This document shows positions 7,655-54,085 of a stretch of 64,000 bases of DNA, in pieces. Every line of letters starts with the position of its first letter. The first letter of the stretch is position 1. Where the stretch lies: assembly GCF_000143415.4 (NCBI RefSeq), contig NW_003314408.1:1-64000 (forward strand), given 5' to 3'. Position numbers and translations under genes: made by a program. Below the pieces are notes generated by a model, which was given only the letters and a program-made list of their open reading frames with translations, was not told the DNA's origin and did not search any database. The DNA comes from Selaginella moellendorffii. Taxonomy: Eukaryota > Plantae > Lycopodiophyta.

Positions 7655-7745
7655 TATCTCACTTCAATTAAGCCACCATTTTGTTTTTTTATCTATAAAA
7701 AAGAAAAATGTACATTCATGAAGAGGGTTAGGGTTTCCACAACAG

Positions 7746-16800: not shown

Positions 16801-16874
16801 TCAATCCGGGATGCCGGCGACACTATAGACGATCCAGACTGACGAGTGATCGTGAGGAAGAATGTGCGCACCCC

Positions 16875-17649
16875 NNNNNNNNNNNNNNNNNNNNNNNNNN
16901 NNNNNNNNNNNNNNNNNNNNNNNNNNNNNNNNNNNNNNNNNNNNNNNNNNNNNNNNNNNNNNNNNNNNNNNNNNNNNNNNNNNNNNNNNNNNNNNNNNNN
17001 NNNNNNNNNNNNNNNNNNNNNNNNNNNNNNNNNNNNNNNNNNNNNNNNNNNNNNNNNNNNNNNNNNNNNNNNNNNNNNNNNNNNNNNNNNNNNNNNNNNN
17101 NNNNNNNNNNNNNNNNNNNNNNNNNNNNNNNNNNNNNNNNNNNNNNNNNNNNNNNNNNNNNNNNNNNNNNNNNNNNNNNNNNNNNNNNNNNNNNNNNNNN
17201 NNNNNNNNNNNNNNNNNNNNNNNNNNNNNNNNNNNNNNNNNNNNNNNNNNNNNNNNNNNNNNNNNNNNNNNNNNNNNNNNNNNNNNNNNNNNNNNNNNNN
17301 NNNNNNNNNNNNNNNNNNNNNNNNNNNNNNNNNNNNNNNNNNNNNNNNNNNNNNNNNNNNNNNNNNNNNNNNNNNNNNNNNNNNNNNNNNNNNNNNNNNN
17401 NNNNNNNNNNNNNNNNNNNNNNNNNNNNNNNNNNNNNNNNNNNNNNNNNNNNNNNNNNNNNNNNNNNNNNNNNNNNNNNNNNNNNNNNNNNNNNNNNNNN
17501 NNNNNNNNNNNNNNNNNNNNNNNNNNNNNNNNNNNNNNNNNNNNNNNNNNNNNNNNNNNNNNNNNNNNNNNNNNNNNNNNNNNNNNNNNNNNNNNNNNNN
17601 NNNNNNNNNNNNNNNNNNNNNNNNNNNNNNNNNNNNNNNNNNNNNNNNN
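16875..17649. other. Assembly gap
   Basis: Run of N. Confidence 1.
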
Positions 17650-17666
17650 TATTATCAAATTGTTTA

Positions 17667-17671
<5 letters not shown>

Positions 17672-17732
<61 letters not shown>

Positions 17733-17805
17733 TTGTATATATATGTATATATATGTATATGTATATATATATATGTGTATCTGTATATATATGTATATAT
17801 ATGTA
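17672..17805. repeat. (TA)n/(TATG)n microsatellite
   Basis: Direct inspection. Confidence 0.95.
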
Positions 17806-19020
17806 TTTACAAACCTTACATCATAGAATATAAAGAATATAAAACTCCCATAAAGCCACTAATATAGTTGTTCACAATTATAATTGAAATAAAATCCAAA
17901 GCCATAACACAAATATCACAACTATGGAATCATGATGCACTAGTTGTAATTCTATATGCAATTGCCAAATATTTGAATTAACCTTGAAGGTATAAGTTTA
18001 TACCAAAGCAAGAAATTTTAAGAGCCATTGGAGTTTATAAAGCACCATTACAGCAAATAATACATCCCATATTTAAGCCTGTCTATTGATAATCCTCTGA
18101 GGCTACTATTAACTTGGACTCATGACCATAAATAAAATCTACTTATGTATCTTCCCATCAACCAAAATTTGATACTTACATTAATGTAGACTCATAATTT
18201 TCATCTTTGTTTAGCATCATATATAGGAAGTCAAACTCACTCTATTCATCTTTTATATCCTTTTTATCCCCTCTTTGAAAGAAAAAAAGTTTTAAAGCAC
18301 CAGCTCTATTTGGATTTGTTGTATTTATTCTCACTTTACAATCTATGTTTAGCCTCACTCTACTATTATATTTATTCAGCTTTACTATACTATCACATTT
18401 GTTTGGCCTTATTATATATATATATTTAATTTGATATTTAATATTCTATTCTAGAATTTTCTAGAATAGTCTAGAATATTCTATTTAGATTTGCTATGCT
18501 TGTTTTCACTTTACAATTCATGTTATTCATCTTTGTTCCATTACTATATCCATTCATCCTCACTCTATTGTTGGGGTTGGACTTTTGTTCATCCCCTCTA
18601 CCCCCTCTTTCAAAGAAAAAGAAATTTAAAATATCATGGTAAAAAAGAGAAACTGAGGAAAATTGAAGAAATATTATTGAAGAAGAAAAAATGAATAAAG
18701 AAGCATTAGAAGAGGAATTTTTAATAATTGTCAAATGTTGCAAATTTGATTACAGGTATTGAAAGTTACCTATTGGCAAATTCTTTCAAATATTTTTTCC
18801 TTACTACCACAACAGTAAGAGGTTGGTATTGTTGGACCCTTTTCAATTTCCACATAAATTAGTTGAGAAACTGATTATCATATATGTAATTAGATTAAAA
18901 GGGCACTAAGGAAGGAAATCTTAAGTTGTTATTGAGTTATACATATATGACACGGTGATGAGAAATTTATGTTATTGGCTTACAAATGTTAATATTGGGA
19001 ACTCTTGTGATATTAAGTTT
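17806..19020 (+). repeat. AT-rich dispersed repeat, inverted copy of ~42560-43760
   Basis: Paired spurious ORFs 18491-18694(+) / 42863-43204(-) and 18471-18743(-) / 42994-43254(+); collinear reverse-complement sequence. Confidence 0.85.
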
Positions 19021-22000: not shown

Positions 22001-23848
22001 CACGCATCTCACTCACAAGGATGTTCCCTTCTCTTGGTCTACTGCTACCCAACAGGCCCTTGACACACTCAAGGTGGCTTTCAGTTTTGTTCCTGTCTTG
22101 ATCCATACTGATCCCTCATAACCTTTCTTCATTGAAGTGAACACCTCCAACTTTGCCATTGGTGCTGTGTTGTCTCAACTTGGAGCGAATCAAGAATTTC
22201 ATCTAGTCACTTTCCATTCTCAGAAATTCCAGCCTGTGGAGATCAATTACGAAATCCACAACAAGGAGCTCCTTGCCATTGTGGATTCCTTTGGAGAGTG
22301 GCATCGTTCCTTTAGGGGGCAAGCCATCAAACAACAGTTTGGATGGATCACAAAAATCTCAAGTACTTTGCCACTTCCCAAGTTTTGAGCCGTCGTCAAG
22401 CAAGGTGGGCACAATTCCTGAGTTGGTTTGACTTTGTTATCAAGTACAAACCTGATGCTCTTTCAAGGCGCTCCTATATCAGTCTAAAGCTTGGTAATCC
22501 TACCTTTGATCAATAGGATCAGGTTATCCTCGGTCTTGATCAGCTTCAAGTTATGGCAATTTTTCTGGCCCCTCAAGACTCCTCCTTGATGGATGCGATC
22601 AGAAACAATCTTCAATCCGACAACCTCGCCAGCGACATTTTCCCCCATCTTCAGACTGGACACCCATTGACTCCCGACTGCCGGCAATTTGATGAGTTCA
22701 AGTTCTTAGATGGCTTGTTATACCGTGGGGAGCAACTTTACGTTCCTGAAGGTGATGCTCAAAGGTTGGTCCTGATGGCATGCCACGATAACCTAACTGC
22801 TAGTCACTTTGGCATTGCAAAAACCTATGAGCTGATTGCATAGGACTTTTGGTGGCCTCACATGGACAACTACATCAAAGCTTTTGTTACCTCCTATGAC
22901 ACTTGCACCCGAAATAAAGTATCTCGCCACCTTCCTTCAAGTTTGCTTTGTTCCCTCTTGGTCCCTTCAAGTCCTTGGGAATCCATCTCCATGGATTTCT
23001 TGAGTGATCTTCCAAGTTCTGGAGGTTTCAACAGCATTTTAGTCGTGGTGGATCACTTCACAAATATAGCACACTTCCTGCCGTGTACCAAGGAGTTTTC
23101 GGGCAAGGACATGGCAACACTGGTATTTAGGGAAATTTTCCGACTTCATGGGATTCCTGCAGATGTGGTTTTGGATTGGGGACCTCAGTTCATCTCTCAT
23201 TTCTGGCAATGGTTCTTGCAGCTGCTTGGAGTGAAGGGCAGCCTCTCTTCGGCGTATCATCCTCAAACTGATGAACAGTCCAAGCGAATGATTCAGATGT
23301 TGGAACAATTCTTGAGGTGCTTCATCAACTATCATCAGGATGACTGGTTTGATATCCTTCCCCTTGCTAAGTTCTCCTATAACAACTCTGTTCACTCCTC
23401 CCTTTGAGTTTGCCCCTTCTTTGCAAACTCTAGCCGAAATTCCTGATTCAATCTCTCACTTTCTTCTCCATCCGAATCCTCATTCAAATCCCTGCTCTGA
23501 GGCATTTGTCTCCAACCTCCACAAAATCCACAACTCCATCTCCTTCCACCTCCATCGTGCTCAAGAATCTCACAAAATATTCGCTAATGTCCATCATCAG
23601 GATTATCCCCCTTACAATATCAGGGATAAAGTCTAGCTCCTCAGGCGAAATATCTCCATCATCAGGCCATGTCCCAAACTTGATTTCAAATGTCTCGATC
23701 CTTTCCCTATCATTGCCATCATTAATCCTGTCACTTATTGCCTTGCACTTCCCTCCTCATATAAAATTCACCCCATTTTTCACTCCTCTCTCCTTGAGCC
23801 TTATATTCCTAGTCCTATTCTAAATTGGGTCATTCTTTCGCCTCCACC
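19022..23848 (+). mobile_element. Ty3/gypsy chromovirus-type (Tcn1/Tf1-sushi-like) retrotransposon, 3'-truncated and degenerate; 5' LTR 19022-19342
   Basis: TG..CA LTR with TATA box; gag (LRQ..FRFGL, CCHC remnant); PR ALLDSGAT; RT FVKRKDGSLRLVIDY..YLDN; RH EINYEIHNKELLAI; INT H..H, PWESISMDF, SSAYHPQTD, GPF-like module. Cut at 23848 by the duplicated block. Confidence 0.92.
20364..20412 (+). promoter_or_regulatory. -1 programmed ribosomal frameshift signal at the gag-pol junction
   Basis: Slippery G GGA AAC (20364-20370), 6-nt spacer, 11-bp stem gtccaaacaga/tctgtttggac; the -1 frame contains protease ALLDSGAT. Confidence 0.8.
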
Positions 23849-25251: not shown

Positions 25252-26499
25252 AGTAATTATTAAATATGATGGTTTTCATTACTAGCTTTAGTAAGTACAT
25301 GGACCTTTATTTTCCATCTGGTAAACTTCAATGAATAGATGAATTATTAGGGTATGGAAACGCACATGAAAATACCCAGATCCGGACTGGGCATACACTG
25401 TAAATAGCGAAGTGACCACGTCAATGACAGGAGAGGAACAAAAGTCTGTTACCTCCTCCCCAAAGTCATTGGTGTCATGTAAACCCTAAACCCTAAGGTA
25501 AATTAACTAAGAAAGTTTATGCATGAATGTATGATAAAACCACATGCATTGTTTTGTTCCTCAAAAGCTCTGAATTGGCATAATTAAACAATTTTTCATT
25601 CCCAAACTGTTTTCATCTTTCTATAATGTGGAGGGAGGAAGAACTTCAAATAATAGTACTTGATATTTAATCCCAACAAGGGAAATTCTTGTTTTTGTTG
25701 TGAAGAATTTAGGTCATTGTTCTAATCCAATAGAAAGTTGTTATTGTGTTTTTGAAAGTTTTTTCCAATTATCAGTGTTCCCCTTTTGAGCAGACTCATT
25801 CCCAATAGTGTTTACATCAGACAACCTTCTATTAGACTCAAGCACCACATGTGATCCTTCACTACACCCATTTCTTCATGCACCTTCTCTTCCTTGACCT
25901 CCGATCAACTATGACTATAACACCAATATTTATGTTGAGGCACTGAATCTGCTATAAAAGTCTATTGCACAATTTCAGCAAGCTCATTCACCATGAGTGT
26001 GATGGAAATGTTAGGTCCAATTCAGCTCTGCTATGTGCCTTTGTTGTTGTAATCCATAAACACATCTTGTTCTGATTAGCAAAGAAACGGTGGTGTGTGC
26101 CTTTTAAATGACTAGAGAAATTTTGAGGTTGAAAGGTAGTGGCTAGTTTTAAATCTTGTGTTGCCGTTGATGACAAACAATCCTCAATTCTGAAATTTCA
26201 TATATCTTGCATTTTGAGGTAGTAAGAAACACTATTAACAATAACAACTCTAAGTTACAACTTCTTACTGTCTAAATGCCACACTTGAATTGTACATATT
26301 ATTTGTCCACTACAAAATACCAACATAATTTCTACTTTCCATCATCTTTAGATTAGTATTGATGAAATCCATAAATTTCTGACAAATTTATTTTAACTTA
26401 TGAACACAAAGACAATTTGTGTTTCTGCATTTAAACATGAAACATTTTATAATTTACCAATAGTTACTTTCTTAATGAAATAATAAACTTGAAATATTA

Positions 26500-27612
26500 A
26501 TAATTTGTTGTGCATTGTATGTAGCAACACTTGGTTTACTAATAGTAGCGTTATTTTTAATTATTAATCCAATTGATCAAATGGAAGTTTATAATTATAA
26601 ATATTAACTAATAGATGAGAATATACTAGGTAGTGTTTAGAAAATTTTATAAATTATAAACATGTTTATAAATCATAAATAAAAGATTAATCTAAATAAA
26701 TAACAACCATTAGATGGAAGAATATCCTAAAATATCCAAAAATATTTTAAGTATATTCACTACCATCCTATTCCCCTCAGGTTTGATTAAGCAAACCAAA
26801 AACTTATTTATAATATAAAAGTTATGAATGATTACAGACTACTTTATATATTGCCAATAGTAACTTTTCTTTAAGTTACTCTTCAAGAAGCAATAAAATA
26901 TGACATATTTTAATTCATGGTTGTGATTATTCTAAAAAATGGACTAGATTTAATAATTAAATCTACAATGCCTTGAAAGAACTTAAACTTTTTAATGAAA
27001 TGACAGAAAATTTTGGAAGGTAAAGAAAATTATATATTATAAACTAAAATTTATATTATTTATTTGGAACAAGAATATTACTATTTACCAAATGCATATA
27101 TGATACATAGATTTAATTATTTTATAGTAAATATTAATATTAGTATTTTATTTTGTTTCAGTGTTAAATTATAGTCACCATTGAGCTAATGATATTAAAG
27201 TATATTCTTTTAGAGTAATGAATATTTCTAGAATATCCAAGTATATTCTAGGATAGTTTTCAATCAAATGGTTGTGCTTTCTCATATTAATTTTTGATTT
27301 GCTTAAGCCAATCTGTAGGGGGGTGGGGTGGTAGTGGATATACCTAGAATATGTTTGAATATTCTAGGATATTTTACCATCTAACGGTTGTTATTCATTT
27401 AGATTAATCTTGTATTTATAATTTATAAACTTTCCTAAACACTTCTTAGTATATTCTAGTTTATTCTAAAATCTAATAGTAAGATTAATCTTGTGTTTAT
27501 AAATTATAAACAATTTTAAAATTTCATTTGATCAATGAGATTAATAAATAGGAATAACACTACTATTAAGCAAACTAAACGTTGGTGCATGGAATGCATA
27601 GCAAATTATTTT
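26500..27612. mobile_element. Foldback/MITE-like element, copy 2
   Basis: Ends aataatttgttgtgcattgtatg / catggaatgcatagcaaattatt with long imperfect inverted arms; a related fragment lies at ~31340-31470. Confidence 0.55.
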
Positions 27613-28352
27613 TATAAGTTTTATAATTATTTTGTAATAAGAGTTAACTAGAACTAATATAAACCCTTTTTTACAGTTATTGTTTAAAGAGAAAAAAAAA
27701 ACTCCATTATTTTACTTGCAGAACTTCATCATTTTCATCAAACATCTATGCTTATTATACCAATAATAAGCAAATTTATCCCAAAAGGATCATTTCTATA
27801 GCACCACTTACTCAAAATATCTCTGACTTGATATTTTCATACTTAGAGAAGCTTTGGGAATAATAATACACTGTCTCCCAAAGAGCTTACTTAAAGTCTG
27901 AAGAGCACAATAAGTACTTCCTTTTCATTCTCTTACATGACATGATAAAATAACACAATCTACACATAGAAACACTTTTTTTTGCAACCTGTTGTTTAAT
28001 ATTTTTCTTTGCAACTAATTTTAATCATTATTCACATATCGCTATTCCCTTCTGTTGGTGTCATGGTATCTTGGAGAGGGATAAACTTTTATCAATTAGT
28101 ACGAATTCTATATTGGATTGAGTTTCTCCTACACAGTGAGATTTAAGCTGAAAAAGTCCAATGTCAACTTAGTTTTAAAAGTCAACTTATATCCAAGCAA
28201 AAAACACGAAGCTGCTTAATGCTGCAACTTATTATTATCAATAGTTTATGATATCCCGTTTCTAATTTTGCGATTATGAGGAAAGTCAACCAAGCTCTAT
28301 GTAATGTGCTTGAAAAGATTGAACTTGTCAGTCAGGATCGTGGGTACACACA

Positions 28353-30743
28353 ATGAATCCCCCCTTTCCAGACGCCCAGCTCGGGATCACCCGAATTGTG
28401 ATCCTCTTAATCCTGATCCAGGCTTTCCTAGCCGGTGGGAAGCTCCTCATGCACGCACAGGACGACGATTTTCCTCTCACCGATGCCGCCAGCAACAAGC
28501 TCCACGCCAGGTTCTTATCTCTCATTACTGCCATCCCTCCCAAGCTCACTTACGATGGAGCCACGGATCCATACTTCCGGGGCCAGGCCATTGTTGACAC
28601 CTTGTTCCTCCTGGAATCCAATTTCTCGCTGGTTCTCAACCTCTACTTTTATAACGTCGAGTACTGCGGCCCAAACTTTAGCCCCGACTTTGGTGGCACT
28701 GGCAGCAAGCTTCGTGCTGGATTCACGGCTCTCCTGCCGGATCTCCGAGGTCTCATGAACTTGAGCTATGGAGCGGCCTATGTCGCCCAAGGACAGTTCC
28801 AAGCCGGATACTACATCAAGGGCATGAACTTGAGAGGATCTAATGGATCGTGCTCGTCTCTCCGGGTGGAAAATTCCACGGATCATATTGGCTACTGCTA
28901 CGACTACGAAGACACGCGACTGAGTTACAGTGTTTTCGACAGGCTCTACCCGGGTTGCCGGATTCAATCTGCTACAAAGGCCGAGTACGTGCTGGAGATG
29001 CGAGAGGACTGCAACGCTGTGTTTAGCGACACCACTACCAACGAGGTTTTGTGGCAGTCGAAAACGAAGGGAAGCGGAAGGGACTGCGAGCTTGTTCTTG
29101 AAAAGACGGCGACGCTAGCTGTGTATGATCGAAACGGAACTGTCTTGGCGAGGTTTGGGACGAACAACTCCACGAATGCGTCCTTGTTTGCGGTCCAGGG
29201 AGATAGAAACATGGTGATCTATGCCATCAGCAACATGAAGACTCCAAAGGCGGTGTGGAGCTCACACACTTTCAAAGGCGAGCTTTTGGAAGTTACGATG
29301 TGAATCTCTTACATGCTTCTTCTTTCTCACTAGATCCATCTTCTCCGAATGGATCGACGCCGCAGCCAAATGGTACCAGCTCTGTTTCGCAGCCTTCGTT
29401 TAGCTCCAAGTCGAGGCGAGGGATTCGAACGATTGCAGTCTCCGTAGGAGCATCTCTCGTTGGAGTGGCACTGGTGATTTTGTGTGTTGTGCTGATTTTG
29501 CGAAAGAAAAGAAATCGTAAAGCTAGCCGGGAAGCGTTGAGCTGGCTACCACCCGGTTCCAAGGCCAGGAAATACTCGTACGAAGAGCTCCAAGAGGCTA
29601 CCAAAGGATTTCACAAGGACAACATGGTAGGCAGAGGCGGATTTGCGAGTGTGTACAAGGTAAGTCTCTGTTTCTTTCTTTCGAGAAGTTCCTCGACTTT
29701 TGATCACACACAGGGAGTTATAGACAATCACTTTGTTGCTGTCAAATACTTGACTAGCTCCGACTTGTCAGACAAGGCAAGGCGGGATTTCGAGAACGAG
29801 GTGTCTACGATTTGCCTCCTCCAGCACAAGAATGTTGTCAAGCTTTTTGGTTTCTGCTCTGAGAAAGAGCACAAGCTCATCGTCTGCGAGTTCATCGAGA
29901 ATGGAAACCTATCGGACGCTTTGTTTAGTAAGTTTCGCTAGATCCATGAAAGAGTTATCATGCTTTCTGTCTCGGCAGGGTCTCCAGACAAAGGTTTGGA
30001 GCTAAATTGGACAGCCAGATACAACATCTGTGTGGGAGTTGCGCAAGGTCTGGCATACTTGCACGGAGAAACATCACAGGCAACCATCGTGCACAGAGAC
30101 ATCAAGGCCCTCAACATCCTTCTAGCAAGCAATCTCGAGGCAAAGATCTCGGACTTCGGCCTGGCAAGACTGATCCAGGAAGATCGGAGCTATATCAGCA
30201 CACGAGCCGCAGGAACAGTGTAAGTTTTTTTATGTCCAAAAACTTCAACTTCCATGGAGATCGTTTCCAGTGGCTATCTAGCTCCAGAGTACGCTCTCTC
30301 CGGCCAGCTCACCGAGAAGGCCGATGTCTACTCGTTTGGGATCCTTGTCCTGGAGATCTTGAGTGGAAGGATAAACATGGATTTCACACTCTTGGATGGC
30401 GATTACTTCCTTCTCGAACGGGTGAGTGGTTTTAAACTCTATATCTTCGTCTAAGATCCTTCTTCCAAACCAGGCGTGGAATGTCTTTCAGAGCGGCCAC
30501 CTCCGGGAGATGATTGACAAGCGACTGGATGTGGGCGAAGAGCGAGATATTCATGAGATGGAGCGCGTGTTCTTGGTGGCTCTCCACTGCACGCAAGCCG
30601 GCGGCAGCAAGCGCCCGTCGATGTTTAGAGTGGTGGGAATGCTCATGGGAGACATGGAAATCGGTGGCACCATCTGCAGGCCTGGCTTCCTCGTTGATCT
30701 GAGGCAAAACCTCGAGCAGTCCAAATCTTTGACCAAAACTTGA
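28353..30743 (+). CDS. B-lectin receptor-like Ser/Thr kinase with an unrecognised N-terminal domain, copy 2, apparently intact
   Basis: Signal peptide [28 protein letters not shown]; lectin repeats ([17 protein letters not shown]); TM; full RD kinase. Introns 29278-29333 (GC-AG), 29660-29713, 29928-29978, 30220-30270, 30422-30473. Confidence 0.88.
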
Positions 30744-32319: not shown

Positions 32320-32735
32320 ATATCTATCGTCCTGGAATGAGATGATCGCAGCATATGCTCAAAGTCTTTCCTCTCAGCGGATGCCAAAACCATCAACAGA
32401 GATGGCCAAGAGCATCACGAAACTGTAAGAGCTTGTTTGATTCGATGAGTGAAGATGCCACAGCACAGAATCGGGACTTGGAACGCGCTTTTCAACGAGA
32501 TCCGACACAGCCAGAGCCCGGCAAGTGTTTGCTTCCATGCCCGACTGGGAGAGGAGCCTCTGGACGTGGCTCCTCCGACAGCTCGCCAAGAGGAAGCCAG
32601 TGCTTGATCGGGGCGTGGAACACAATTACCTCCCCGTACGAATACCCCAGCAAGCCAAGGAGCTCTTTGATGCCGCTGATGAGCGAGATGGCGTCTCCTG
32701 GACTGCCGTAATCGCAGCGCTCTCGCCTCCAGGAG
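32320..32735 (+). pseudogene. PLS-class pentatricopeptide repeat (PPR) gene remnant
   Basis: Fragments SSWNEMIAAYAQ, CKSLFDSM, GAWNTI and QAKELFDAADERDGVSWTAVIAA in different frames. Confidence 0.7.
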
Positions 32736-33074
32736 GTGATGGTACGAATTCAAGATGAAAGTACAAAAAAACCCAGCTTCTCCGTTGTCCACCTTCCTAG
32801 TCCTCGCAGTGCTGGCGGGGTTGGGCTTCGAGCGGAGCAACGTCCGTCAGACTCTGCTTCGTGGCATCAGAGAGCTCTTTCTGCAAGAAGACATTGTACA
32901 TATGGTATTAATCGGTAGCCACGAACTTCTGTGGAACTTCAACCTTCCCTCGGTCATGGGAGCTACATTCTGGGAAGGAGGAAATAGAAACTATTATAAG
33001 TTCATATGGGATACACCATCATCAAACAACCTATATGTTGTTTGGAAGTCACACACCGAGATACACAGACTCAG

Positions 33075-33526
33075 TCACGCACACCATCCACCAACTCCGA
33101 AGATGACTGCCACGCACGTTAGCCCCTCACAGCACTGTGTTCCCTTTGGAAGATAGTCCGGTGCACAACTCTTGCCTTTGCCGGCACATGAGTTCCCATT
33201 GGCATTCGAGAGGAGAGCTAGATCATTAAAGATGCGAACCACGTCTTGGTAAAGCTCATGATCTTCATCTGCAAAATCTTATAATGAGCAAAAGAGCCAA
33301 TAAAATCTCACACTCACCAATGTTACTGTCTTTAGCAAGATCAACTACCTCTTTGTTTTCCAGGGTGATGTCGTAAACCTCAGGACTTTCTCCTGCATCA
33401 TTTGGAATATAAATGACCAAGAAACTTGAGCCACATCTCACACTCACCGATATTAACAGGACGAGCAGATGCTATAAACATTATCATAGTGAAGATAGTA
33501 AAGACGAGAGGCATTGCCATTGACAT
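33075..33526 (-). CDS. Secreted cystine-knot (knottin/ICK) peptide precursor, 115 aa, 3 exons
   Basis: Exons 33526-33448, 33392-33318, 33268-33075 with phase-1 GT-AG introns of 55 and 49 nt splice into one open frame: signal peptide, acidic propeptide, then SCAGKGKSCAPDYLPKGTQCCEGLTCVAVIFGVGGWCA*. Confidence 0.85.
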
Positions 33527-33863
33527 GATACTAACTGATTGAATGAGCTCTAGGAACCTCAGTTTATCGAGTCGATATCGAGTCTGAGACAAAGTTTAAG
33601 GTCGGGTTTGAGATTGAGTCCAAGACCAAGTTGTGAGACACAAAATCCCTAGGCCCCAAAGTGGAGCCGGAGGGGCGCCACGTGGTAGTGGCCGAAGTGA
33701 AAGCCAAACGAGCGTAACACGTTTGGACTAAAAGCTCCGCCTTGAAAGGTCAAGAGCGGGAGTGGAACCCCTAACGAAGTGCTCGAGGAATGAGCACGAA
33801 ACGAGCAATAAGCGAGGCTCCAAAAACGGACCCGAAAGGACCAACACATGACACGTGGAAGTG

Positions 33864-34370
33864 TCCGAGATGGAGTCCAAGGCGGACCCGAGATGGAGTC
33901 CGAGATGGACCCGAAATGGAGTCTGATATGGAGTCCGATATGGAGTCCGAAGTGGAGTCCGAGATGGAGTCCGAGATGGACCCGAGATGGACCCGAGATG
34001 GAGTCCGAGATGGAGTCCGAGAAGGACCCGAGATGGAGTCTGAGGTGGAGTCCGAGATGGACCCGAGATGGAGTCCGAGATGGAGTCCGAGAAGGACCCG
34101 AGATGGAGTCCGAGGTGGAGTCCGAGATGGACCCGAGATGGAGTCCGAGATGGAGTCCGAGAAGGACCCGAGATGGAGTCCGAGGTGGAGTCCGAGATGG
34201 AGTCCGAGATGGACCCGAGATGGAGTCCGAAGTCGAGACTGGGACCAAGACCGAGACCGGGACCGAGACCGAGATCGGAACCAAGACCGAGACCGAGGCC
34301 GAGGCCGAGTCCGAGTCCAAGTCCGAATCCGAGTCCGAGTCCGAGTCCGAGTCCGAGTCCGAGTCCGGAG
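33864..34370. repeat. 12-bp (GAGATGGAGTCC/GAGATGGACCC) and 6-bp (GAGTCC/GAGACC) tandem arrays inside the LTR; also at 39755-40325 and 51495-51895
   Basis: Direct inspection; copy number differs between LTRs. Confidence 0.95.
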
Positions 34371-37300
34371 CCTGAGAGGGTGAAAGCCCAAAGCGTTCGT
34401 CTCCCAGACCCTGGGGGGTTTGGTGAGCTCCAAAAGTATAGTAGGGGGAGGACTGCAGTGGAGCCAGTTTGGCTAGGAAAGGCCAGTTTGGCCCAGGAAG
34501 GCTGGACCCAGTGTTGGGTGATGAGCTGCCCACTGGGAAGTCCAAAACTAGAGTGAACACGGACCGACAAGCGGGGTAGCTTGGTGAAGTGTTCAAGAGC
34601 CGGCTCTAGTTCCCCCGGGAGATCGACTGGCCGATGCTCCCAGTCCAAGTGTGGGTGGCACTACCTACTTGGATACCAGGCGTGGCTCAACGGAACCTCG
34701 CTCTAAGCCCATGGCTAGAGCACCTAAAGGCGAAAGGTGGGGAGAGTACCCAGGTGGCTCGCGTAAGGCCACGGTGTTCCGAAATGGTGTCCCAAAGTCC
34801 CAGACTGTGGAAAGGAAGAGGGGTAGCCCTCTGGTGGGGTGACCAAGGATACAGTCACACAGTGAGGAAGTCCTCGAGGATAGTGGGACTTAGTGGTCAG
34901 GCCGGTGGGCCTTGATCCAGTGGCAGTGTTGGCGAACACAGCCAAGGACAGAAAAGGGACTTGGTGGGGACCGGAACAGAGATATTGGGGAAGGCTATTC
35001 CCCATGTCTGTAGGCATCCTAAGGATGTTAAGGAGTGGATCTGGGATGATCCCTCATGGACGGATGACCCAATCTTTGAGAGACGGGATTGGAATGCAGA
35101 TGGTGTTGGACCACCAGTGTGACCAAGGTAATTGGGCATGGCCTTAGCGTAACGGGCCGATACGTTGGTGGTATCTTGGGGTGTCGATCATGGGATCGGA
35201 CACATGGAGCACTTGGACCAAGTGCTAAGGTTGAGTGGCATGGATGCCATTCTTGGGGCTAGCAAGTCCCAAGTCCTGAGTTGGACTTATGGAGGTTGTG
35301 AATGAGACTCCTCCAAGTGGTCGGAGGTGTGGTTAAGTGACTAAAGTAGAATGGAAAAATTAGTCGCTTACAACTTGGTATCGGAGTTGTTCCTTAGTCC
35401 GACTTTTATTGGTGCTCAAGTATATCACCACTAGTGTTGGCATCGAAAGGTCCGAGGAGGGGGCCTATCCTTGAGGAGTAGCAAGTCGGGAAGGCATGGC
35501 TCTCCATTACAGTTCACGTGTGAACTTGTAGGCGAGGTGGTGGATAGAAAAGGGCCAATAATGGAACGACTTTGGGATCTTGGGAACAGTGCAAGGTTTT
35601 CCTCATTGAGTTGAGGATGTGATCCGGATGAGCATTTGTCTCAGCAAATTGGCTAAGGTAGTTGTGGTAGACAACTATAGTTGGGATCACGGGAAAGATA
35701 AAGACTCCAAAACAATAAAGGAGTCACAAGATTATCCTCACATAGTTGAGGCTGGTGCTCATGAAGGTGAGACCGGAATGGATGACCATGAGAGGTCAAG
35801 CAGGGGTGAAGACATGAGTCCTTGAAGTGGTAGCCAGGGCTACCTCTAATAAATGCTAGAACAACCCAAGGAGTTGGGGGTGTACTTAGAGGATGAGTTG
35901 GTATTCTCATCACATGGACAAGTGGTCCTAAGGGGCAAAAGGTTGCCCCAAGAGAACAAATCAAGTGGCAGAGTAACACTTGCAAAGATGGTCCTTGTGA
36001 GTAGGACCTGAATACAAGAAGTTGTATTCCAGCGAGTTGACACCTCGAAAACTAAGACCTCGCAGGTCATTGGATTAGTAAAGTCTAAAATGCTGGATGA
36101 CTCAAGTGGAGTCAGGGAATGGTCCTAAGGGATTGGTTGAAGCATTTGGACGGAGGTGTATGGTGCCCCATGAGGTATGGGGAGGATCATAAGATCCAAG
36201 TATGAGAACAGTGAGTATCTCATTGATGGCAGAATGTGCCATATTAAAGTCATGGGAAAGATGTTCCCAGAAGAAAGCAACTTTGGCCTAGAGTTGGGTG
36301 CAAACACTATGGTGCGGTGCTAACGGATAGTTAGCATGAGGAACAATTATATTGGTTTTGGCAAAGACCTAAACACTAATAAGTAGTGTTATAAGGATAG
36401 GCTCGTGGAGCCGATGGTGTGGAGACACCGAAGGTGCCAAGGCGTGCTGCCTTGAGGTCAAGTTGGCGGGTTCATGAGAACCCCGTCCAAAGGAATCCCA
36501 ATGGAAATGGGAATGGCATAGCCTAAGCTGGAAGGCATGCGGTTAGAGTGTGGTGACCCGGATAATGATGGAGGTGTGGAAGCACCAAGCAATGAGTTGT
36601 AGGACTTGACAATTATGGAGCAACTAAGCAAGAGGTGCAAGATAATTGGTTAAATGGGTAGAAGGTAACTACCCAAGACTTCTTAATGGCATAAGGAAGT
36701 TAGATATACCCTTACGGGGGATAAATTGCTTATGTTGCAATATAGTAAGTCAATGTCGTTAACGGGAATGCTCATTGTCAGGAGGCCATCATTGGGACAC
36801 CTAAACACTCTAGAACACCAGGAGGTGGTGTTTCATGTCACAAGGGCAATAGATAAGGCCCAAGGGACTAAGTCCCTAGCGAATGATGGATAGTAGGTGC
36901 TATCCAAATATCCAAGGTTGTGGAGATAGGAGAAGACTGTCTACCCGAATTGGACAAAGCCAAAAATGGAATGTTGGCAAGGCTAGTGATGGGCATGTAA
37001 AGGCCCATAAGCAGCAACGTTAATCCCGATATGTGGGATTATAAGGTGAGTATGCCCAAGATTGAAGAACCACTTCCTATGCTATCGGGTAGGTTCATCC
37101 CTAAGAATACTTGCTAAGGCATAGTAAAATGTGCAAAGCTATCCTCCTAGTCTGGAGGAGAATAACCAAAGGAAACATATAGGGCCAAAGGCAAGTAGTA
37201 TTGGGATGGAACCGAACCATAGGAATCGAAGGGCAAAACCAAGGTTGGTTATGCCAGCTGAGAGTGGAGAATCAAGTGGGGGCTCGAGGGTGTTGCCGTT

Positions 37301-39420: not shown

Positions 39421-42400
39421 CTAGGTGCCAAGGATGGAAATGGTAACACGTGTGGGTGTTACTTTATAAAATGGTTTACCGTTCGATGAGGACATCGAAC
39501 TTCGTCTATGGGTGGTGGAGTTGTGAGACACAAAATCCCTAGGCCCCAAAGTGGAGCCGGAGGGGCGCCATGTGGTAGTGGCCGAAGCGAAAGCCAAACG
39601 AGCGTAACACGTTTGGACTAAAAGCTCCGCCTTGAAAGGTCGAGAGCGGGAGTGGAACCCCTAACGAAGTGCTCGAGGAATGAGCACGAAGCGAGCAATA
39701 AGCGAGGCTCCAAAAACGGACCCGAAAGGACCAACACATGACACGTGGAAGTGTCCGAGATGGAGTCCAAGGCGGACCCGAGATGGAGTCCGAGATGGAC
39801 CCGAAATGGAGTCTGATATGGAGTCCGATATGGAGTCCGAAGTGGAGTCCGAGATGGACCCGAGATGGACCCGAGATGGAGTCCGAGATGGAGTCCGAGA
39901 TGGAGTCTGAGATGGAGTCCGAGAAGGACCCGAGATGGAGTCCGAGGTGGAGTCCGAGATGGACCCGAGATGGAGTCCGAGATGGAGTCCGAGATGGAGT
40001 CCGAGAAGGACCCGAGATGGAGTCCGAGGTGGAGTCCGAGATGGACCCGAGATGGAGTCCGAGATGGACCCGAGATGGACCCGAGATGGAGTCCGAGATG
40101 GAGTCCGAGATGGAGTCCGAGAAGGACCCGAGATGGAGTCCGAGGTGGAGTCCGAGATGGAGTCCGAGATGGACCCGAGATGGAGTCCGAAGTCGAGACT
40201 GGGACCAAGACCGAGACCGGGACCGAGACCGAGATCGGAACCAAGACCGAGACCGAGGCCGAGGCCGAGTCCGAGTCCGAGTCCGAATCCGAGTCCGAGT
40301 CCGAGTCCGAGTCCGAGTCCGGAGCTTGAGAGGGTGAAAGCCCAAAGCGTTCGTCTCCCAGACACTGGGGGGTTTGGTGAGCTCCAAAAGTATAGTAGGG
40401 GGAGGACTGCAGTGGAGCCAGTTTGGCCAGGAAAGGCCAGTTTGGCCCAGGAAGGCTGGACCCAGTGTTGGGTGATGAGCTGCCCACTGGGAAGTCCAAA
40501 ACTAGAGTGAACACGGACCGACAAGCGGGGTAGCTTGGTGAAGTGTTCAAGAGCCGGCTCTAGTTCCCCCGGGAGATCGACTGGCCGATGCTCCCAGTCC
40601 AAGTGTGGGTGGCACTACCTACTTGGATACCAGGCGTGGCTCAACGGAACCTCGCTCTAAGCCCATGGCTAGAGCACCTAAAGGCGAAAGGTGGGGAGAG
40701 TACCTAGGTGGCTCGCGTAAGGCCACGGTGTTCCGAAATGGTGTCCCAAAGTCCCAGACTGTGGAAAGGAAGAGGGGTAGCCCTCTGGTGGGGTGACCAA
40801 GGATACAGTCACACAGTGACGAAGTCCTCGAGGATAGTGGGACTTAGTGGTCAGGCTGGTGGGCCTTGATCCAGTGGCAGTGTTGGCGAACACAGCCAAG
40901 GACAGAAAAGGGACTTGGTGGGGACCGGAACAGAGATATTGGGGAAGGCTATTCCCCATGTCTATAGGCATCCTAAGGATGTTAAGGAGTGGATCTGGGA
41001 TGATCCCTCATGGACGGATGACCCAATCTTTGAGAGACGGGATTGGAATGCAGGTGGTGTTGGACCACCAGTGTGACCAAGGTAATTGGGCATGGCCTTA
41101 GCGTAACGGGCCGATACGTTGGTGGTACCTTGGGGTGTCGATCATGGGATCGGACACGTGGAGCACTTGGACCAAGTGCTAAGGTTGAGTGGCATGGATG
41201 CCATTCTCGGGGCTAGCAAGTCCCAAGTCCTGAGTTGGACTTATGGAGGTTGTGAATGAGACTCCTCCAAGTGGTCGGAGGTGTGGTTAAGTGACTAAAG
41301 TAGAATGGAAAAATTAGTCGCTTACACAAGTCTGAATACTAATACAGGTTGTGGGGTGAAAGCCCAAAGCGTGTGTCTTTGTAAGCTCCTGAGTTTGGAC
41401 TTCTCAAGAGGTCACTCAATCCAGTACTATTCAAACCTAAGGAAACTTAACCCCAAATATCCCAAGACCCTTAATCGGTTGGAAAAGGGGGTGCACTTTT
41501 GTTCATGGGCCCTTTTCCTTCTATATTTGAACCTTATGGATTATACAGTCTCCCCGGGGGGGGGGGGGAGGGGGCAAACTAATCTTGAAGGAACTCTTTA
41601 GTGGTGCTTCTAAATTGACTTGAGGTTGAGATTGGGGCTTAAGGGCCTTGAATGGGAGTGAGTATGGACTCAAGTGGTGTCGAAAGGGCCACCTAAAGAA
41701 GTGCTCAAAAGCAACTCCCACTCCTGGAAGGGAAATTGACTACGGTGCTCCCAACTCATGTAGAGTGGTGCCCCACTTGAATACCTTACGGCTCATTGGT
41801 CTTTGCCGTTCCTAGAAGTTTGGGCCTGTAACATTATCATAGGATGAGATTTGGATATACTGTCACCATAGATCCTTAGAACCTTGGGGGATAAATGGGG
41901 ATAAAATAGCCATTAAGGGCTCTCTCATCAAGCAATTGCCCCTTTTCCAATTGGTTTAAGGGGAAAGAGATAAAGTGCATTACAAAGCCTTTCCTTCGGG
42001 ATGGAAGTGGGGGAGTAAAGTACCCATACTGGGCTGTTAGGCCACGGTATTTTCCCCCGGTGTCCTGAAGCAAATGTTACACCCAAGGCTTGGGATTTAA
42101 AGGTCCTATGATTAAGTCTTGTTGTACCAAAGGATGTTAGGAATTTGGAGGCTTAGTGTGCTTAATTGCTTGTGTTTGCTAGGAGTGTAACCAAATCTTA
42201 AGTTTAATCTAACTTGGGGAGGGGGATTGGGAGAGAATTTGGGAATCTATGGATAGATGGATAGCACTCTATTGCTTATGTAGTGAGTTGTTGAAATCAA
42301 GTAAGACCAAGTAAGAACTAGTACAATAGGTGGAAACTTTGGCGAGGAAACTTAACTAAGGCTAAGACCATGGTGATCAGATAGACAAAGTAAGCTAGCA

Positions 42401-43756
42401 AATTAGAAAGAAAAAATTTGTGGCTTACACTAAACACTTTCTATAAATAACTAATGGGACCGAACATAAGGGGCATGAGAGCAAAAGTGTCTTGGCAAAT
42501 ACAATATGTTATCATCTAATGAATATTAAGGGACCAAACTTAGTATTATAAGGGTTCCCAACACTAACATGTGCAAGCCAATAATATAAGTTTTTCATCA
42601 CCGTGTTAAATATGTTTGACTGAATAACAACTTAGGATTTCCTTCCTTAGTGCCCTTTTACTCTAATTGCACATATGATAATCAATTTTTTAACTAGTTT
42701 AGGTGGAAATTGAAAAAGGGTCCAACAATACCAACCTCCTATTATCGTGATAGTAAGGAAAAAATATTTGAAAAAATTTGCTAATATGTAATTTTTGATA
42801 CCCATAGTCAAATTTGCAACATTTAAAAATTATTAAAAATTCCTCTTCTAATACTTCTTTATTCATTTTTTCTTCTTCAACAATATTTCTTCAATTTTAC
42901 TCATTTTCTCTTTTTTACCATAATACTTTAAATTTCTTTTTCTTTGAAAAAGGGGGTAGAGGGGATGAATAGGAGTCCAACCCCAATAATAGAGTGAGGA
43001 TGAATGGATATAGTAGTGGAACAAAGATGAATAATATGAATTGTAAAGTGAAGACAAGCATAGCAAATTTAAATAGAATATTTGGCCATAATATAATAAG
43101 GTCAAACAAATGTGATAGTGCAGTGAGGCCAAATAGATATGATAGTAACATAGATTGTAAAGTGAAAATAAGCACAACAAATCCAAATAAAGCTGATGCT
43201 TCAAAACTTTTTTTCTTTCAAAGAGGGGATAAAAAGGATATAAAGGATAAATAGAGTGAGTTTAACTTTCTATATGTGATGCTAAACAAGGATGAAGGTT
43301 GTGAGTCTACATTAATATAAATATTAAATTTTGGTTGATAGGAAGATGCATAGGTAGATTTTATTTATGGTCATGAGTCCAAATTAATAGTAGCCTGAGA
43401 AAATCATCAATAGATAGAGTTAGACATAGGATGTATTATTTTCTGTAATGGTGTTTTATGGATTGCAATGGCTCTTAAAGTCTCTTGCTTTGGTATAAAT
43501 TTATACCTTCGAGGTTGGTTCAAGTATTTGGCAGTTACACACAGAATTACAACTAATGCATCATAATTCCATAGTTGTGATATTTGTGTTATGGCTTTGG
43601 ATTTTATTTCAATCATGGTTATTAATAACTACATTAGTGGTTTTATGGGAGTTTTATATTCTTATGGTAATTTATAATCACTTAGCAAAAGCTCGAAATG
43701 TTCCATTTAATATATTGTCATCATCTTTGAAACAGAGGATGGTGTAAGGTTTGTAA

Positions 43757-44793
<1,037 letters not shown>

Positions 44794-45265
44794 AATTAAA
44801 AATAAACTATTTTATAATATTTCTTATGTGTAGCTCTATGTCACATTTGCATTAATAAAATAATTAATAAAATTTTGAAACAATATTTAAAAATTTACTC
44901 TTATAATATAAGTTTATGAAATGTTATTCATCCCAGTATTACTCAAACCCAAAGCAAAGATGCATAATTTTAAGTATCTTAAAACCTTTAATTGATTAGA
45001 AAAAAGAGTATATTTTTCTTCATAAGCCTTTTTATTTTACATTTTAACTTTTATTGATTATCTTTCAAACTATTGTTTTTGTTTTCTTAAACAATACTAA
45101 TGTTTATAATTTTTAATGTAGTTTGTGCTAGTGTAAAAACATATTTCAAAGTATAAAATTAATATTTAAATTAATCTATGTAAATGTTATAGCAATTAAA
45201 TTTTTATATTATCTTCATTTATTATTTAATTGTAATTATATAATTGGAATATTAATAATTGTGAT

Positions 45266-48200
45266 TATGAGTGCTTGGAATATAGAAAGGGAATACAGAA
45301 AATATGCATATCAATTAGCCCAGAAACCTAGCTTATATACAAGAGCGAATAGTTCAAATTGAAACCAATCTGACAACTACCAAAATTTCACTACGCTATT
45401 ATTAATATACGGCATTGTACCCGTACACTTGGCCCTCACATCATCCCCTCCTCTTGGAATAATGGAAGACCATCAGGGTTCTCTTGTAGATGGGCTGGGA
45501 TCTGGAGGAACATCAGGAAGAGGCATCAACGGATCTATAGGTGGTATTAACTACTCCTGATCCCTTTGTATTAAGCATTTCAACCATTGCATATGCACAA
45601 TCTCTAGAGGATTGGCTTACTGGACGTCATGCTGAACCTTATAAACTTGTGGTCTAACTTGCCACAACACCTGATATAGTTCTCTCCACTGCGCAAGGAG
45701 CCCCTTAGATAAACCACGTACTGTAAGATAAGGAAAACGGATTAACACAAAATCATCCACTTTGTACTCCGCAAGTGGATGATGATGGGAGTTGTAGTGC
45801 CGTTGTTGTCCCACTTGTATGTGGCCTAACTGTTCGGTAGACTTTGCTTGGACAAGTGGAAAAATGCTCGTCAAATACTGATCCCACAACCTAGCATCGA
45901 CAGCTCGTAGCAATCGCGAAGGTAAACCCAGCTTTGTTGGTAATATTGGATCATGACCATATAGGAGTTTATATGGTGAAGCACCAATAGAACTCTGCAC
46001 CCCTATGACATATGCATAATGAAGAGACGGCAAATAACCATCTTAATCTGAATGCTAAAAGTTCACATACTTCACAATCATCCCTTTGAATGTCCGAATG
46101 AGCCGTTCTACCAGACCCTCTGATTTGGATGATAAGCACTCGTGAAAGTGTGGCATATCCCCAACTGAGACGTCAAAACATGAAATGCCTCAGCCATAAA
46201 TGCGGGACTATTATTCGAAAGAATCAATTCTAGACAAGAATGCTGGAACACCACTCGATTAAGGAAGAAATATCCAACAACAGTTGCAGAGGCGCTAGCA
46301 AGAGCACCAACTTCCACCCAATGAGTCATGTAGTCAGAAGCAATAATAACATACTCATTGCTAACAGTTGACTGTGGAAAACGTCCCATAAGATCAAATG
46401 CCACCAACTCAAATAAATGGGAAATTGCAATTGACTCTAACCGTCCTTCTGCGGCACGAGGGGGAGTATTACGAGCTTGGCACCAAACACAGCTATACAC
46501 ATACCGGATAATATCACGTCACATCTCCAGCCAATAGAAAGACTTGTGTAGCTTCTCGATTACACGATAGTGTCCTATATGCCCACCTAAGAGCATTCAT
46601 AACCCGGGTTCAAGGTGAGATTCATTAATATTCCTTTACTAAGTTTCTAATGTATTTTATTTCAAGGTGAACAATCCGAATCTGAATCAGAGGAGGCGTG
46701 ATGGCATGTGGCCTGAGATGATGTGACATATGTATTTACCAATCACACGTGCATAAATCTAATAATATGGCGTGTGGCCCATATTAATGGCACATAAACC
46801 CATATTGTGGGCTTACGTGCTTTATGTACCATCATTCCCTTGCAGCGTGTGTGTTGGTTTCCTTTTATAACACAACGAACTCCATATTTTGGGGTGAAGA
46901 GCGTTCTCATGGCAAGCACAAAATCTGTAAGTGAGGCAGAAAAGGAGACGGAGAAGGAGATAGGTGAAGATGTAGAATATATAAGTCTTCCAAACTCCCC
47001 GTACTATACTCTAGGTGATCATTTTTCTGAACAAACGGCAACATTAACAACTATCGAGAACGCCCCAGTAACGTCAGAGACAACAATCCAAAGCAAAACA
47101 ACTGACCTGGAAAAGGATGATAGTACCGCTGAGAGTACCAAAAAGGAGGTGTCCACTAGCGCTTAGGCTTATAATGGCGTGTGCCCTCATGCCATTTACT
47201 TGATCACCAAATACCTTTTTCCCTTTGCACTAGTATATCTTAATACCGGTCTGAGAAATAGAATGGCATGTGCCCTCAGGCCTTTTACTAAATCACCTTT
47301 GAAAGAAATGCAAGCCTCTATGTCGTAAAAAAAAGGTACTAGAGAAATTCCTTAATAATATGAATGTTATTTAGTTTCATGAAAATACACTAAGGGTCAA
47401 ATGAGTTAAATGACTTCTCCAGACTAGCAATGCCTCTTGCTACACCTTCACAATTAGATTCGTTAGAAAAAGATAACATTGAATAATATCTAAATGTTCT
47501 CACCATTAAGTTATATGTCTGGCTAATAGGAATGACGTTCATCTTGGAAAGCTCACCACACGCTCAATGAACAAACAAATAGTGTGTGCGCGCATGCCAT
47601 CGCTCTTTTTTAGCTTCAGATTCAGCTTGTTCACCTTGACAATGAGATTTATTATACAACCAGATGGACTCAGTCTGGACACAAAGTCACCGCGCTAGTC
47701 ACCATGCCCCAGATATGTCTAGCCCCTGGACAAAAACCATATAATTTTACGTCATTTTCAAATACTTGAAAATTTGTACCTAGTCCCATTTTACTGAATA
47801 AATCCCACTTTAACGAAATAAAGCTTAAGAGGTGACATCTCATAATGTTGTGCCAAGCGAAGAGCATTGTCAAAGGTGGCTGGAGCAAGTGCATGGACAA
47901 GTCCAACAAGATCTTGACAAAGTGTTCGCCACAACATTCTAAGCTTGATCCGCTCCGACATATTCGGCTCCGCACGAAGCAAAAGGCTTCGGAAACAAAT
48001 ACCAAATTGCATCACCGACCCAAATGGCCCTTGATGAAGACGATACAATTGTTGGAGGGCATTATCACAATCGTCAGCATGTCCGAATGCACGTTTGAAG
48101 ACGTCTGAAAGAACACTCCAATCCCTATGAGTGGCTACGCTTAAACCATTGTATCACTATAGCACTGTCCCTTGGAGACATGTGGGAAACTCACGCAAAC

Positions 48201-53432: not shown

Positions 53433-54085
53433 AGAGCATTAGGAAGGCCTTGAAGCTTTCCAGGTTTGTACTTGATAACAAAGTCAAACCAACTCAGAAA
53501 TTGTGCCCACCTTGCTTGACAACGGCTCAAAACTCGGGAAGTGGCAAAGTACTCAAGATTTTTGTGATCCGTCTAGACTGTTGTTTGATGGCCCGCCCCC
53601 TCCAAGAAATGGCACCACTCTCCAAAGGAATCCACGATGGCAAGGAGATCCTTGTCGTGGATTTCGTAATTGATCTCCGCAGGCTGGATTTTCCGAGAAT
53701 GGAAAGCAACCGGATGAAGTTCTTGATCCGCTCTGAGTTGAGACAGCACAGCACCGATGGCAAAGTCAGAGGTGTCAGCCTCAATGAAGAAAGGTTGTGA
53801 GGAATCAGCATGGATCAAGACGGGAGCAGAACTGAAGGCCGCCTTGAGTGTGTCGAAGGCCTGCTGGGTAGCAGTAGACCAAGAGAAGGAAACATCCTTG
53901 CGAGTGAGATGCGTGAGAGGAAGGACAATGTTAGAGTAGTGATCAATGAATTTGCAGTTGAAGTTGGCGAAGCCAAGGAAAACCTGAACGTCCGACATTG
54001 ATTGTGGAGGCTCCCATTCGAGAATAGTCTTGACTTTGGCAGGATCCATCGTGATACCCTCAGGAGTGACAATCAGGAGTGACAA
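53433..54085 (-). mobile_element. RT/RNase H fragment of the Tcn1-like gypsy family
   Basis: GITMDPAKVKTILEWEPP..VFLGFANF..EADTSDFAIGAVLSQ..EINYEIHDKDLLAI; homologous to 21845-22460. Confidence 0.9.

Follow-up and report, generated by a model that had tools for sequence, protein, structure and literature searches.

Introduction

Does a short gene of the spikemoss Selaginella moellendorffii encode a secreted knottin, and which peptides are its nearest relatives? A 2024 review traces all plant knottins characterised so far to a few families of angiosperms (PMC11253845). The gene considered here lies on the minus strand of contig NW_003314408.1, in a window of 64,000 nucleotides (the whole stretch of DNA that was analysed), among protein-kinase fragments and retroelements; the organism was named by NCBI. 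A reading made from the sequence alone had proposed that a three-exon knottin precursor gene was hidden at this place and that an asparaginyl endopeptidase would release a peptide of 38 residues from its product. In the literature searched, no paper was found on this gene, on any lycophyte knottin, or on the related fungal family that is described below. The explanation favoured here, with a probability of about 70%, is that the locus holds an intact and expressed gene for a knottin-type secreted precursor, which belongs to a Selaginella family, has fungal kin through gene transfer, and plays a role in defence. The parts of this explanation differ in strength and are considered one after another.

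Gene Structure and Transcription

The gene is modelled as three exons between positions 33526 and 33075 (Table 1). Its product has 115 amino acids without internal stops, and when each exon is translated, the result is exactly the three pieces that had been given by the sequence-only reading. The three-exon gene with two short canonical introns is thus borne out by the translation, by splice joints in RNA contigs, and by an identical protein in the databases.

One search of sequencing runs found 20 runs that contain part of the stretch. Several of them are small, transcriptome-sized runs with approximately half of the words of the stretch, as is expected of a spliced message. Four runs (X1, X2, X3, and X16) were aligned to positions 32600–34000. 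The contigs of X1, X2, and X3, which come from three studies, each bear both joints, with skips of 49 nt (33269–33317) and 55 nt (33392–33446). Both joints have CT..AC ends in plus-strand orientation, equivalent to GT..AG for a minus-strand gene, and they match the two introns whose junctions had been predicted at 33447/33393 and 33317/33269. RNA contigs span 33318–33391 of exon 2 with zero mismatches. In the large, DNA-like run X16, there are no joints, and one contig is unspliced across 33159–33567. The label "RNA" of a run is a guess made by the tool; the evidence is the splice joints themselves. The gene is transcribed and correctly spliced.

The contigs cannot fix the true start of the transcript, nor the levels of expression. 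The TATA-like element is located approximately 25 nt upstream of the first base in the X1 contig. It aligns with TATATAAA of a paralogue in one pairwise alignment, and an alignment of five sequences placed it differently. As the X1 and X2 contigs continue past position 32600, the transcript may reach further downstream than the minimum given in Table 1, and a contig that covers two genes would not prove that there is a single transcript. Downstream of the stop and under the same two contigs, a segment of 79 nt (32648–32726) recurs with 4–7 mismatches in longer transcript contigs that diverge on both sides, and it resembles an exon fragment captured from another gene. The candidate reading of 32525–32758 as a PPR fragment found no support in Pfam. 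Upstream, a high-copy, low-complexity repeat starts at 33629, approximately 100 bp from the ATG, and the gene is still expressed.

Both introns open with the same 13 nt, GTGAGTGTGAGAT (33447–33435 and 33317–33305), and in both cases these follow an Asn-Ile codon pair and a G. Such a repeated arrangement suggests that exon 2 originated from a duplication of the boundary between exon 1 and intron 1.

Table 1. Features of the knottin-like gene on contig NW_003314408.1, listed in the order of transcription.
Feature	Position	Strand	Basis or remark
TATA-like element GATAAA, putative core promoter	33563..33568	-	sequence only
5′ untranslated region, minimum extent	33527..33544	-	X1 contig to 33540 and 4 more letters
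Start codon ATG	33526-33524	-	sequence
Exon 1	33526-33448	-	ends in a phase-1 split codon
Exon 1, signal-peptide codons 1-21, with hydrophobic core and A-S-A before the predicted cut	33464..33526	-	translation
Exon 1, first codons of the pro-region	33448..33463	-	sequence, translation, RNA contigs
Intron 1, 55 nt, GT..AG	33393..33447	-	joints in X1, X2, X3
Exon 2, acidic pro-region	33318..33392	-	translation; RNA contigs
Intron 2, 49 nt, GT..AG, phase 1	33269..33317	-	joints in X1, X2, X3
Exon 3, whole	33268-33075	-	sequence, translation
Exon 3, remaining acidic pro-region, ending ..NANGN	33192..33268	-	translation, paralogue alignment
Exon 3, knottin-like domain of 38 codons with six Cys (Ser-Cys ... 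Cys-Ala) and an invariant hydrophobic Cys V-Cys VI hairpin	33078..33191	-	spacing, AF2, ICK matches, fungal homology
Stop codon TGA, immediately 3′ of Cys VI-Ala	33075..33077	-	sequence
3′ untranslated region, minimum extent	32921..33074	-	X3 contig ends at 32921

Annotation Status and Surroundings of the Gene

A protein search with the reading frame of exon 3 showed that the product is identical over all 115 residues to XP_024522483.1 (P0001), the "uncharacterized protein LOC112343373" of Selaginella moellendorffii. RefSeq therefore already holds the exact product, and the paralogues are present in GenBank as SELMODRAFT hypothetical proteins. The gene can no longer be regarded as hidden or easily missed by annotation, as had been assumed. 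A paralogue family, for which a search had been proposed, does exist, and LOC112343373 is one of at least seven annotated paralogous loci in Selaginella. Cluster look-ups gave the other loci (LOC9629796, LOC9629800, LOC112341459, LOC9654912, LOC9654360, and SELMODRAFT_445429), all of which are named "uncharacterized" or "hypothetical". They are spread over three other large scaffolds, and the same three-exon layout recurs in paralogue loci. A search of the 64-kb window found no second copy of the gene, and there is no flanking inverted repeat around the window copy. Nothing relevant came from Rfam, tRNA, and NCBIfam scans, and no Pfam or NCBIfam family covers the protein. Within this small Selaginella family, LOC112343373 stands apart as the divergent and solitary member.

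The remainder of the window contains several features of its own. Low-complexity tandem repeats occupy 33629–34650 and 39539–40602; they are SDS/ISGPSRTP-like in several frames, and their word depth reaches thousands in the DNA-like run. Two protein-kinase segments, at 10930–12575 and 28353–30743, comprise ORF pairs of 335 + 228 aa and 316 + 228 aa (Pkinase/PK_Tyr_Ser-Thr). They represent a local duplication with copies approximately 17 kb apart, each beside an AT-rich island. The AT-rich islands have a GC content of 15–30% and are found at 16001–18000, 26001–28000, and 42001–46000 in a window that otherwise has 41–54% GC. Short repeats at 9295–10234 and 26522–27629 are also present around the paralogue loci. 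Remnants of retroelements or transposons, with RT_RNaseH, an integrase core domain, and DUF7869, lie at 53573–54190, 22862–23407, and 56258–57283.

Precursor Layout and Processing

The product is predicted to be a secreted precursor that consists of a signal peptide of approximately 21 aa, an acidic pro-region of approximately 55 aa, and a C-terminal six-Cys domain of 37–38 aa, which supports the layout that had been read from the sequence. The putative signal cleavage site was placed by the −3/−1 rule, and the motif ..ASA/RP.NIG (the slash marks a cut here and below) is invariant in an alignment of 10 paralogue products. The pro-region has a net charge of approximately −9, and its part in exon 3 carries an insertion of 10 residues that the paralogues lack. 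With a GRAVY of +0.46 and a charge of +0.7, the mature domain is hydrophobic and almost neutral, and in its charge it is unlike the classical cationic plant antimicrobial peptides. All six Cys are within the last 37 residues. The proposed spacing C-x6-C-x10-CC-x4-C-x10-C was confirmed, with loops of 6/10/0/4/10.

The pro-region would be removed in the secretory pathway. In the window copy, the cut may occur after Asn, and most paralogues would need another protease. The sequence-only reading had proposed that an asparaginyl endopeptidase cuts at GN/S and releases a 38-mer. The Asn is present in this copy, at −2 from Cys I (..NANGN/SC), and one paralogue product reads ..NEN/C. The proposed site itself exists only in the window copy. 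However, 7 of the 10 aligned paralogue products read ..TLK/SC and have no Asn, and in the fungal relatives Cys I is preceded by T, Q, R, or S, never by Asn. With Asn absent from most paralogues and from the fungal relatives, a family-wide mechanism is unlikely to depend on it, and cleavage exactly as proposed is doubtful. No basic processing motif is seen before Cys I of the window protein. The cleavage site and the boundary of the 38-mer are weakened by these comparisons and should be treated as putative.

Predicted Fold of the Six-Cysteine Domain

In an alignment of eight plant and fungal domain sequences, the six Cys are invariant, and they form a C-C-CC-C-C framework in a span of 37 aa. 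An AF2 model of the 39-aa domain, built with these eight sequences, has a pLDDT of 80 and strands at 27–29 and 36–38, with a C-terminal β-hairpin. The full-length model, built from three sequences, was too poor (pLDDT 46), and only the domain model was used in structural searches. With VIA-align, the best superpositions were on inhibitor-cystine-knot (ICK) peptides from animals: agelenin (Z 4.5, 1.9 Å, 35/35), purotoxin-1 (Z 4.3), and mu-agatoxin (Z 4.1, 1.6 Å). The plant knottins bidentatide and MCh-1 gave Z values of 3.2 and 3.1. In total, 65 of the 76 compared chains had Z ≥ 2, and the listed matches were mostly ICK peptides. Foldseek gave no match for the domain model at E ≤ 0.001, as is normal for a domain of only 39 residues, and its best 50 matches were nearly all ICK peptides.

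Sequence profiles and protein-language-model features point in the same direction. Of the 15 matches that the domain profile found among PDB sequences, 12 were knottins, and the best was bidentatide, which aligned end to end (E 0.0087). When a plant-only profile was used, the best match was wrightide R1 (E 0.11). By features, the nearest ESM-Atlas clusters were all knottin precursors, namely, theraphotoxins, agatoxin-like proteins, huwentoxin, conotoxins, and kalata B1, with a top score of 0.89 and 176 shared features. By structure, the atlas gave agouti-related protein at a TM of 0.54. The tool rates these atlas results as leads only. An ESM Atlas query with the Grifola protein described below returned nothing useful.

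These results give computational support to the prediction that the domain folds as an ICK (knottin) peptide, as had been proposed: the AF2 confidence, the structural and profile matches, and the ESM-Atlas clusters agree with a knottin-type fold. The knot itself is a separate matter. Disulfide-rich modules of other kinds gave VIA-align scores close to those of the ICK toxins, with CBM1 at Z 4.1, 3.6, and 3.5, colipase at Z 4.0, and the IGFBP N-domain at Z 3.6. Since these modules score nearly as high, the assignment to a small disulfide-rich, knottin-like class is well supported, and the knot itself is a prediction. A CBM1-like binder or a colipase/IGFBP-like fold with no true knot might also seem to fit a domain whose relatives are found in wood-decay fungi. 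Against this, a Pfam search at E ≤ 10 found only knottin-type toxin and tachystatin families and no CBM1, colipase, or IGFBP. The C-C-CC-C-C pattern and the full-length superpositions at 1.6–1.9 Å also favour an ICK peptide, as do the knottins found by the profile among PDB sequences. A module of another kind is thus very improbable.

Comparison with Known Knottin Families

The domain, a predicted member of the knottins, can be compared with several known types of these peptides. The classical plant knottins, represented by the potato carboxypeptidase and squash trypsin inhibitors, follow the pattern C-X3-6-C-X5-C-X3-5-C-X1-2-C-X5-6-C (PMC11253845). The loops of the window domain depart from this pattern, in that Cys IV directly follows Cys III and the final loop is long. 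Cyclotides need a C-terminal Asn or Asp followed by a tail for the cyclisation of the backbone (PMC11253845). In the window protein, the stop follows one residue after Cys VI (Cys-Ala-stop), and there is no tail.

Bidentatide, which presumably belongs with Mj-AMP1/2 and PAFP-S, has a pattern similar to that of the window domain, C.E.G.SC.P..CC.G..CVPI....G.C, as well as low polarity and a hydrophobic last loop. It differs in its angiosperm source and in its loops, which are 6/7/0/3/10, within the 6/7-8/0/3/10 of the Caryophyllales knottin type. Its similarity was found in a PDB-sized search and is insignificant at database scale. The I-IV, II-V, III-VI knot of bidentatide has been mapped experimentally, and alkylation of its six Cys with iodoacetamide raised the mass by approximately 348 Da (PMC8348887). 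In wrightide R1, an α-amylase inhibitor, the alignment extends from Cys I to the Cys-Ala at the end, and the 6-residue first loop, the adjacent Cys III and Cys IV, and the 4-residue loop are the same. The wrightide R1/amaranth AAI type nevertheless differs from the window domain: proline-rich and far shorter second and last loops are found in it, it has no hydrophobic GVGGW hairpin, and the match is insignificant.

The ICK toxins of spiders, cone snails, and other animals (agelenin, purotoxin-1, mu-agatoxin, and cyriotoxin-1a) superpose best, over the whole peptide (Z 4.1–4.5, 1.6–1.9 Å), and they resemble the window protein in further respects. Their precursors also consist of a signal, an acidic propeptide, and a C-terminal knottin, they are the nearest clusters in the protein language model, and their paralogues likewise combine a conserved pre-pro part with a variable mature peptide. 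However, there is no significant sequence relationship, and the window gene is a plant gene. Of the spider-toxin families considered in Pfam (Toxin_7, Toxin_12, and Toxin_35), Toxin_7 scored 14.8–15.8 bits and Toxin_12 scored 12.4 bits, approximately half of their gathering cut-offs of 27 and 21. Pea albumin 1b (PA1b)/leginsulin is a plant knottin whose insecticidal effect, exerted on a membrane protein, depends on the hydrophobic last loop. Its cysteine spacing and its precursor differ from those of the window protein, for which Pfam gave no Albumin_I match at E ≤ 10.

Divergence within Selaginella

The window copy shares only approximately 500 bp (33559–33059) with the paralogue loci, and its divergence from them is uniform, at 18–24% over flanks, introns, and exons, with a dN/dS of approximately 0.65 in the mature domain. 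Its intron 1 is 84% identical to the intron of a paralogue. The other copies are found in repeated cassettes beside bHLH-MYC_N and kinase genes (L001, L005, L006, and L007), and two cassettes are approximately 10 kb apart on one scaffold. Two of the copies (L006 and L007) show differences in the 3′ flank alone; their aligned upstream regions, introns, and coding sequences are identical. One paralogue gene (7668–8088) lies in the loop, approximately 1.6 kb long, of an inverted repeat whose arms are approximately 1.2 kb long and 79–93% complementary (L001:6187–10459, GL377647.1).

Among the near-identical cassette paralogues, the mature domain diverges 4–6 times faster than the flanks, the pre-pro part, and the introns. 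These parts differ by 0.8–2.7%, and the mature domain differs by 3.6–13% (Fisher p = 3e-5 and 3e-4). The changes in the mature domain are mostly nonsynonymous (11.5 vs 2.5 and 4 vs 0). Divergence that is focused on the mature domain is the pattern seen in families of toxin and defence peptides. Gene conversion of the 5′ part could contribute to it, because synonymous change is also raised in the mature domain.

Fungal Relatives

Two word-index protein searches found Selaginella proteins only. An exhaustive HMMER search of 1.84 billion representative proteins was used because the claim of a family rests on the absence of relatives. Beyond Selaginella, the domain matched two neighbouring proteins of Grifola frondosa, A0H81_12613 (80 aa, E 8e-8) and A0H81_12612, which has two domains. 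It also matched Sparassis crispa SCP_0309540 and two unnamed clusters of ENA and Logan contigs, which are fungus-like metagenome scaffolds. These relatives span E values of 8e-8 to 3e-4 and 37–49 bits. No other plant protein reached E 0.001 in this search, where approximately 37 bits or more are needed for detection and weaker plant relatives of so short a domain would drop below the limit. The sequence-only reading had missed that the only relatives detectable among these proteins outside Selaginella are fungal and do not include other plant knottins. An alignment-based scan of JGI metagenomes matched 112 patterns and gave no confirmed relative. One protein of 1032 aa (P0005), which matched the pro-region at E 8e-7, was rejected as a bacterial protein built of tandem Hcp repeats (type VI secretion); the match is spurious, as its score sums five weak repeats.

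The fungal genes are native to their genomes. In Grifola, at least four copies of the domain lie within 12 kb, adjoining genes for DUF7918, Duc1, and a short-chain dehydrogenase. In Sparassis, two copies are located among fungal-type kinase genes. The Polyporales proteins share with the window protein the 6/10/0/4/10 spacing, the invariant G, S, P, G, and GG, and a hydrophobic ..GVGGWC.. hairpin at the C-terminal end. They also consist of a signal peptide, a spacer, and then the domain, and there is a phase-1 intron upstream of the domain. The differences are in the spacers, which are Ala/Ser/Thr-rich in Polyporales and acidic in Selaginella, and in the last residue, which is Trp in most fungal domains, Gly in Sparassis, and Ala in Selaginella. 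In addition, Grifola and one metagenome scaffold have a further intron that separates the final sense codon from the stop codon and is missing in Selaginella. This stop-adjacent intron follows ..WCW at 6299–6358 of the Grifola locus (L002) and at 676–~764 of the metagenome scaffold (L003). Because of its position, ORF callers continue across it, and the predicted proteins gain a spurious C-terminal tail (P0007, P0009 fusion).

The unnamed Selaginella-Polyporales "GVGGWC" family can be defined here by a signal peptide, a spacer, and a C-terminal domain of the pattern C-x4-G-x-S-C-x-P-x(7-10)-CC-x-G-x2-C-x7-GG-x-C-x-stop, which the window protein fits. The invariant columns of the plant and fungal alignment are C3, G7, S9, C10, P12, C21, C22, G24, C27, G35, G36, and C38. 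The domains of the window protein and of Grifola share 65% identity; their cysteine spacing is the same, and their hairpins between Cys V and Cys VI are nearly alike. This value is inside the range of 46–70% that is found between fungal domains. The distribution of the family over a plant and fungi appears to be unreported in the literature searched.

Transfer or Common Descent

How can a plant and a few fungi share such a peptide? It has to be considered whether the gene is an artefact, either fungal DNA that contaminates the plant assembly or an ORF that arose by chance among repeats. The window is indeed repeat-rich, with a high-copy repeat close upstream of the gene, and short introns are typical of fungi too. 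Nevertheless, the spliced transcripts from three studies and the paralogue loci, which lie on large plant scaffolds and adjoin bHLH-MYC_N and kinase genes, have already refuted this explanation, and the plant genes are unlike the fungal ones in GC content and in the arrangement of their introns.

Relatives that are found only in Polyporales fungi and fungus-like scaffolds, with identities of up to 65% and the same spacing, suggest a gene transfer between plant and fungus. A knottin gene may have moved horizontally between Polyporales-like basidiomycetes and the Selaginella lineage, with later amplification partly in long-inverted-repeat cassettes and diversification of the mature peptide under positive selection. 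This scenario is tentative and is given slightly less than an even chance. A maximum-likelihood tree of 37 columns placed the Selaginella sequences in one clade (86/71), and as the fungal part of the tree and the attachment point of the plant clade are not resolved, it gives no direction of transfer.

The absence of a direction is also compatible with descent without any transfer, in a family that is old and vertically inherited or wider in plants than is visible, as peptides of 37 aa are poorly annotated and hard to detect. The fungal matches have just 37–49 bits where approximately 37 are needed against 1.84 billion proteins, and the Caryophyllales knottin bidentatide, with its end-to-end alignment, could be a distant relative. 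However, the mature domain evolves fast in Selaginella, with 12–13% nucleotide divergence where introns differ by 2–3%. An identity of 65% to the Grifola protein, within the fungal-fungal range, is hard to square with such fast change and with divergence since the split of plants and fungi. The lack of any other plant protein at E 0.001 among the 1.84 billion also counts against common descent, which is considered rather unlikely. A horizontal transfer in either direction is the preferred reading of this distribution.

Function and Significance

The hydrophobic, glycine-rich hairpin between Cys V and Cys VI is the most conserved part of the molecule in both kingdoms. Together with the hydrophobic, near-neutral character of the domain, it favours a defence peptide that engages a membrane or a membrane protein. 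Membrane-partitioning spider toxins and PA1b offer an analogy. A compact, near-neutral, hydrophobic knottin would bind the membrane of an attacker, or a protein in it, through the hydrophobic hairpin. Such a role may be correct with a chance that is close to even or somewhat lower.

An endogenous signalling ligand would be another function for a peptide of this kind, as many cysteine-rich secreted peptides of plants are signals (established; PMC11253845), and the near-neutral charge agrees with it. On the other hand, the amplification in repeat cassettes and the mostly nonsynonymous divergence that recent paralogues concentrate in the mature domain fit genes of an arms race better, and homologues in saprotrophic fungi argue against a ligand of a plant-specific receptor. 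A signalling function is accordingly quite improbable, and defence is the preferred reading.

As the gene is already in RefSeq, the gain lies in its interpretation and not in the discovery of a gene. The range of these very stable peptides is widened by a spikemoss family that is expressed, present in several copies, and diversifying fast, and its conserved hydrophobic hairpin makes it a new scaffold with an unusual feature. Its fungal-only relatives provide a concrete and testable case of a possible transfer of a defence-type peptide between plants and fungi. If the proposed origin is correct, it would extend knottins beyond the angiosperm families in which they have been characterised so far and could count as an early case on record in which an inhibitor-cystine-knot peptide passed between kingdoms.
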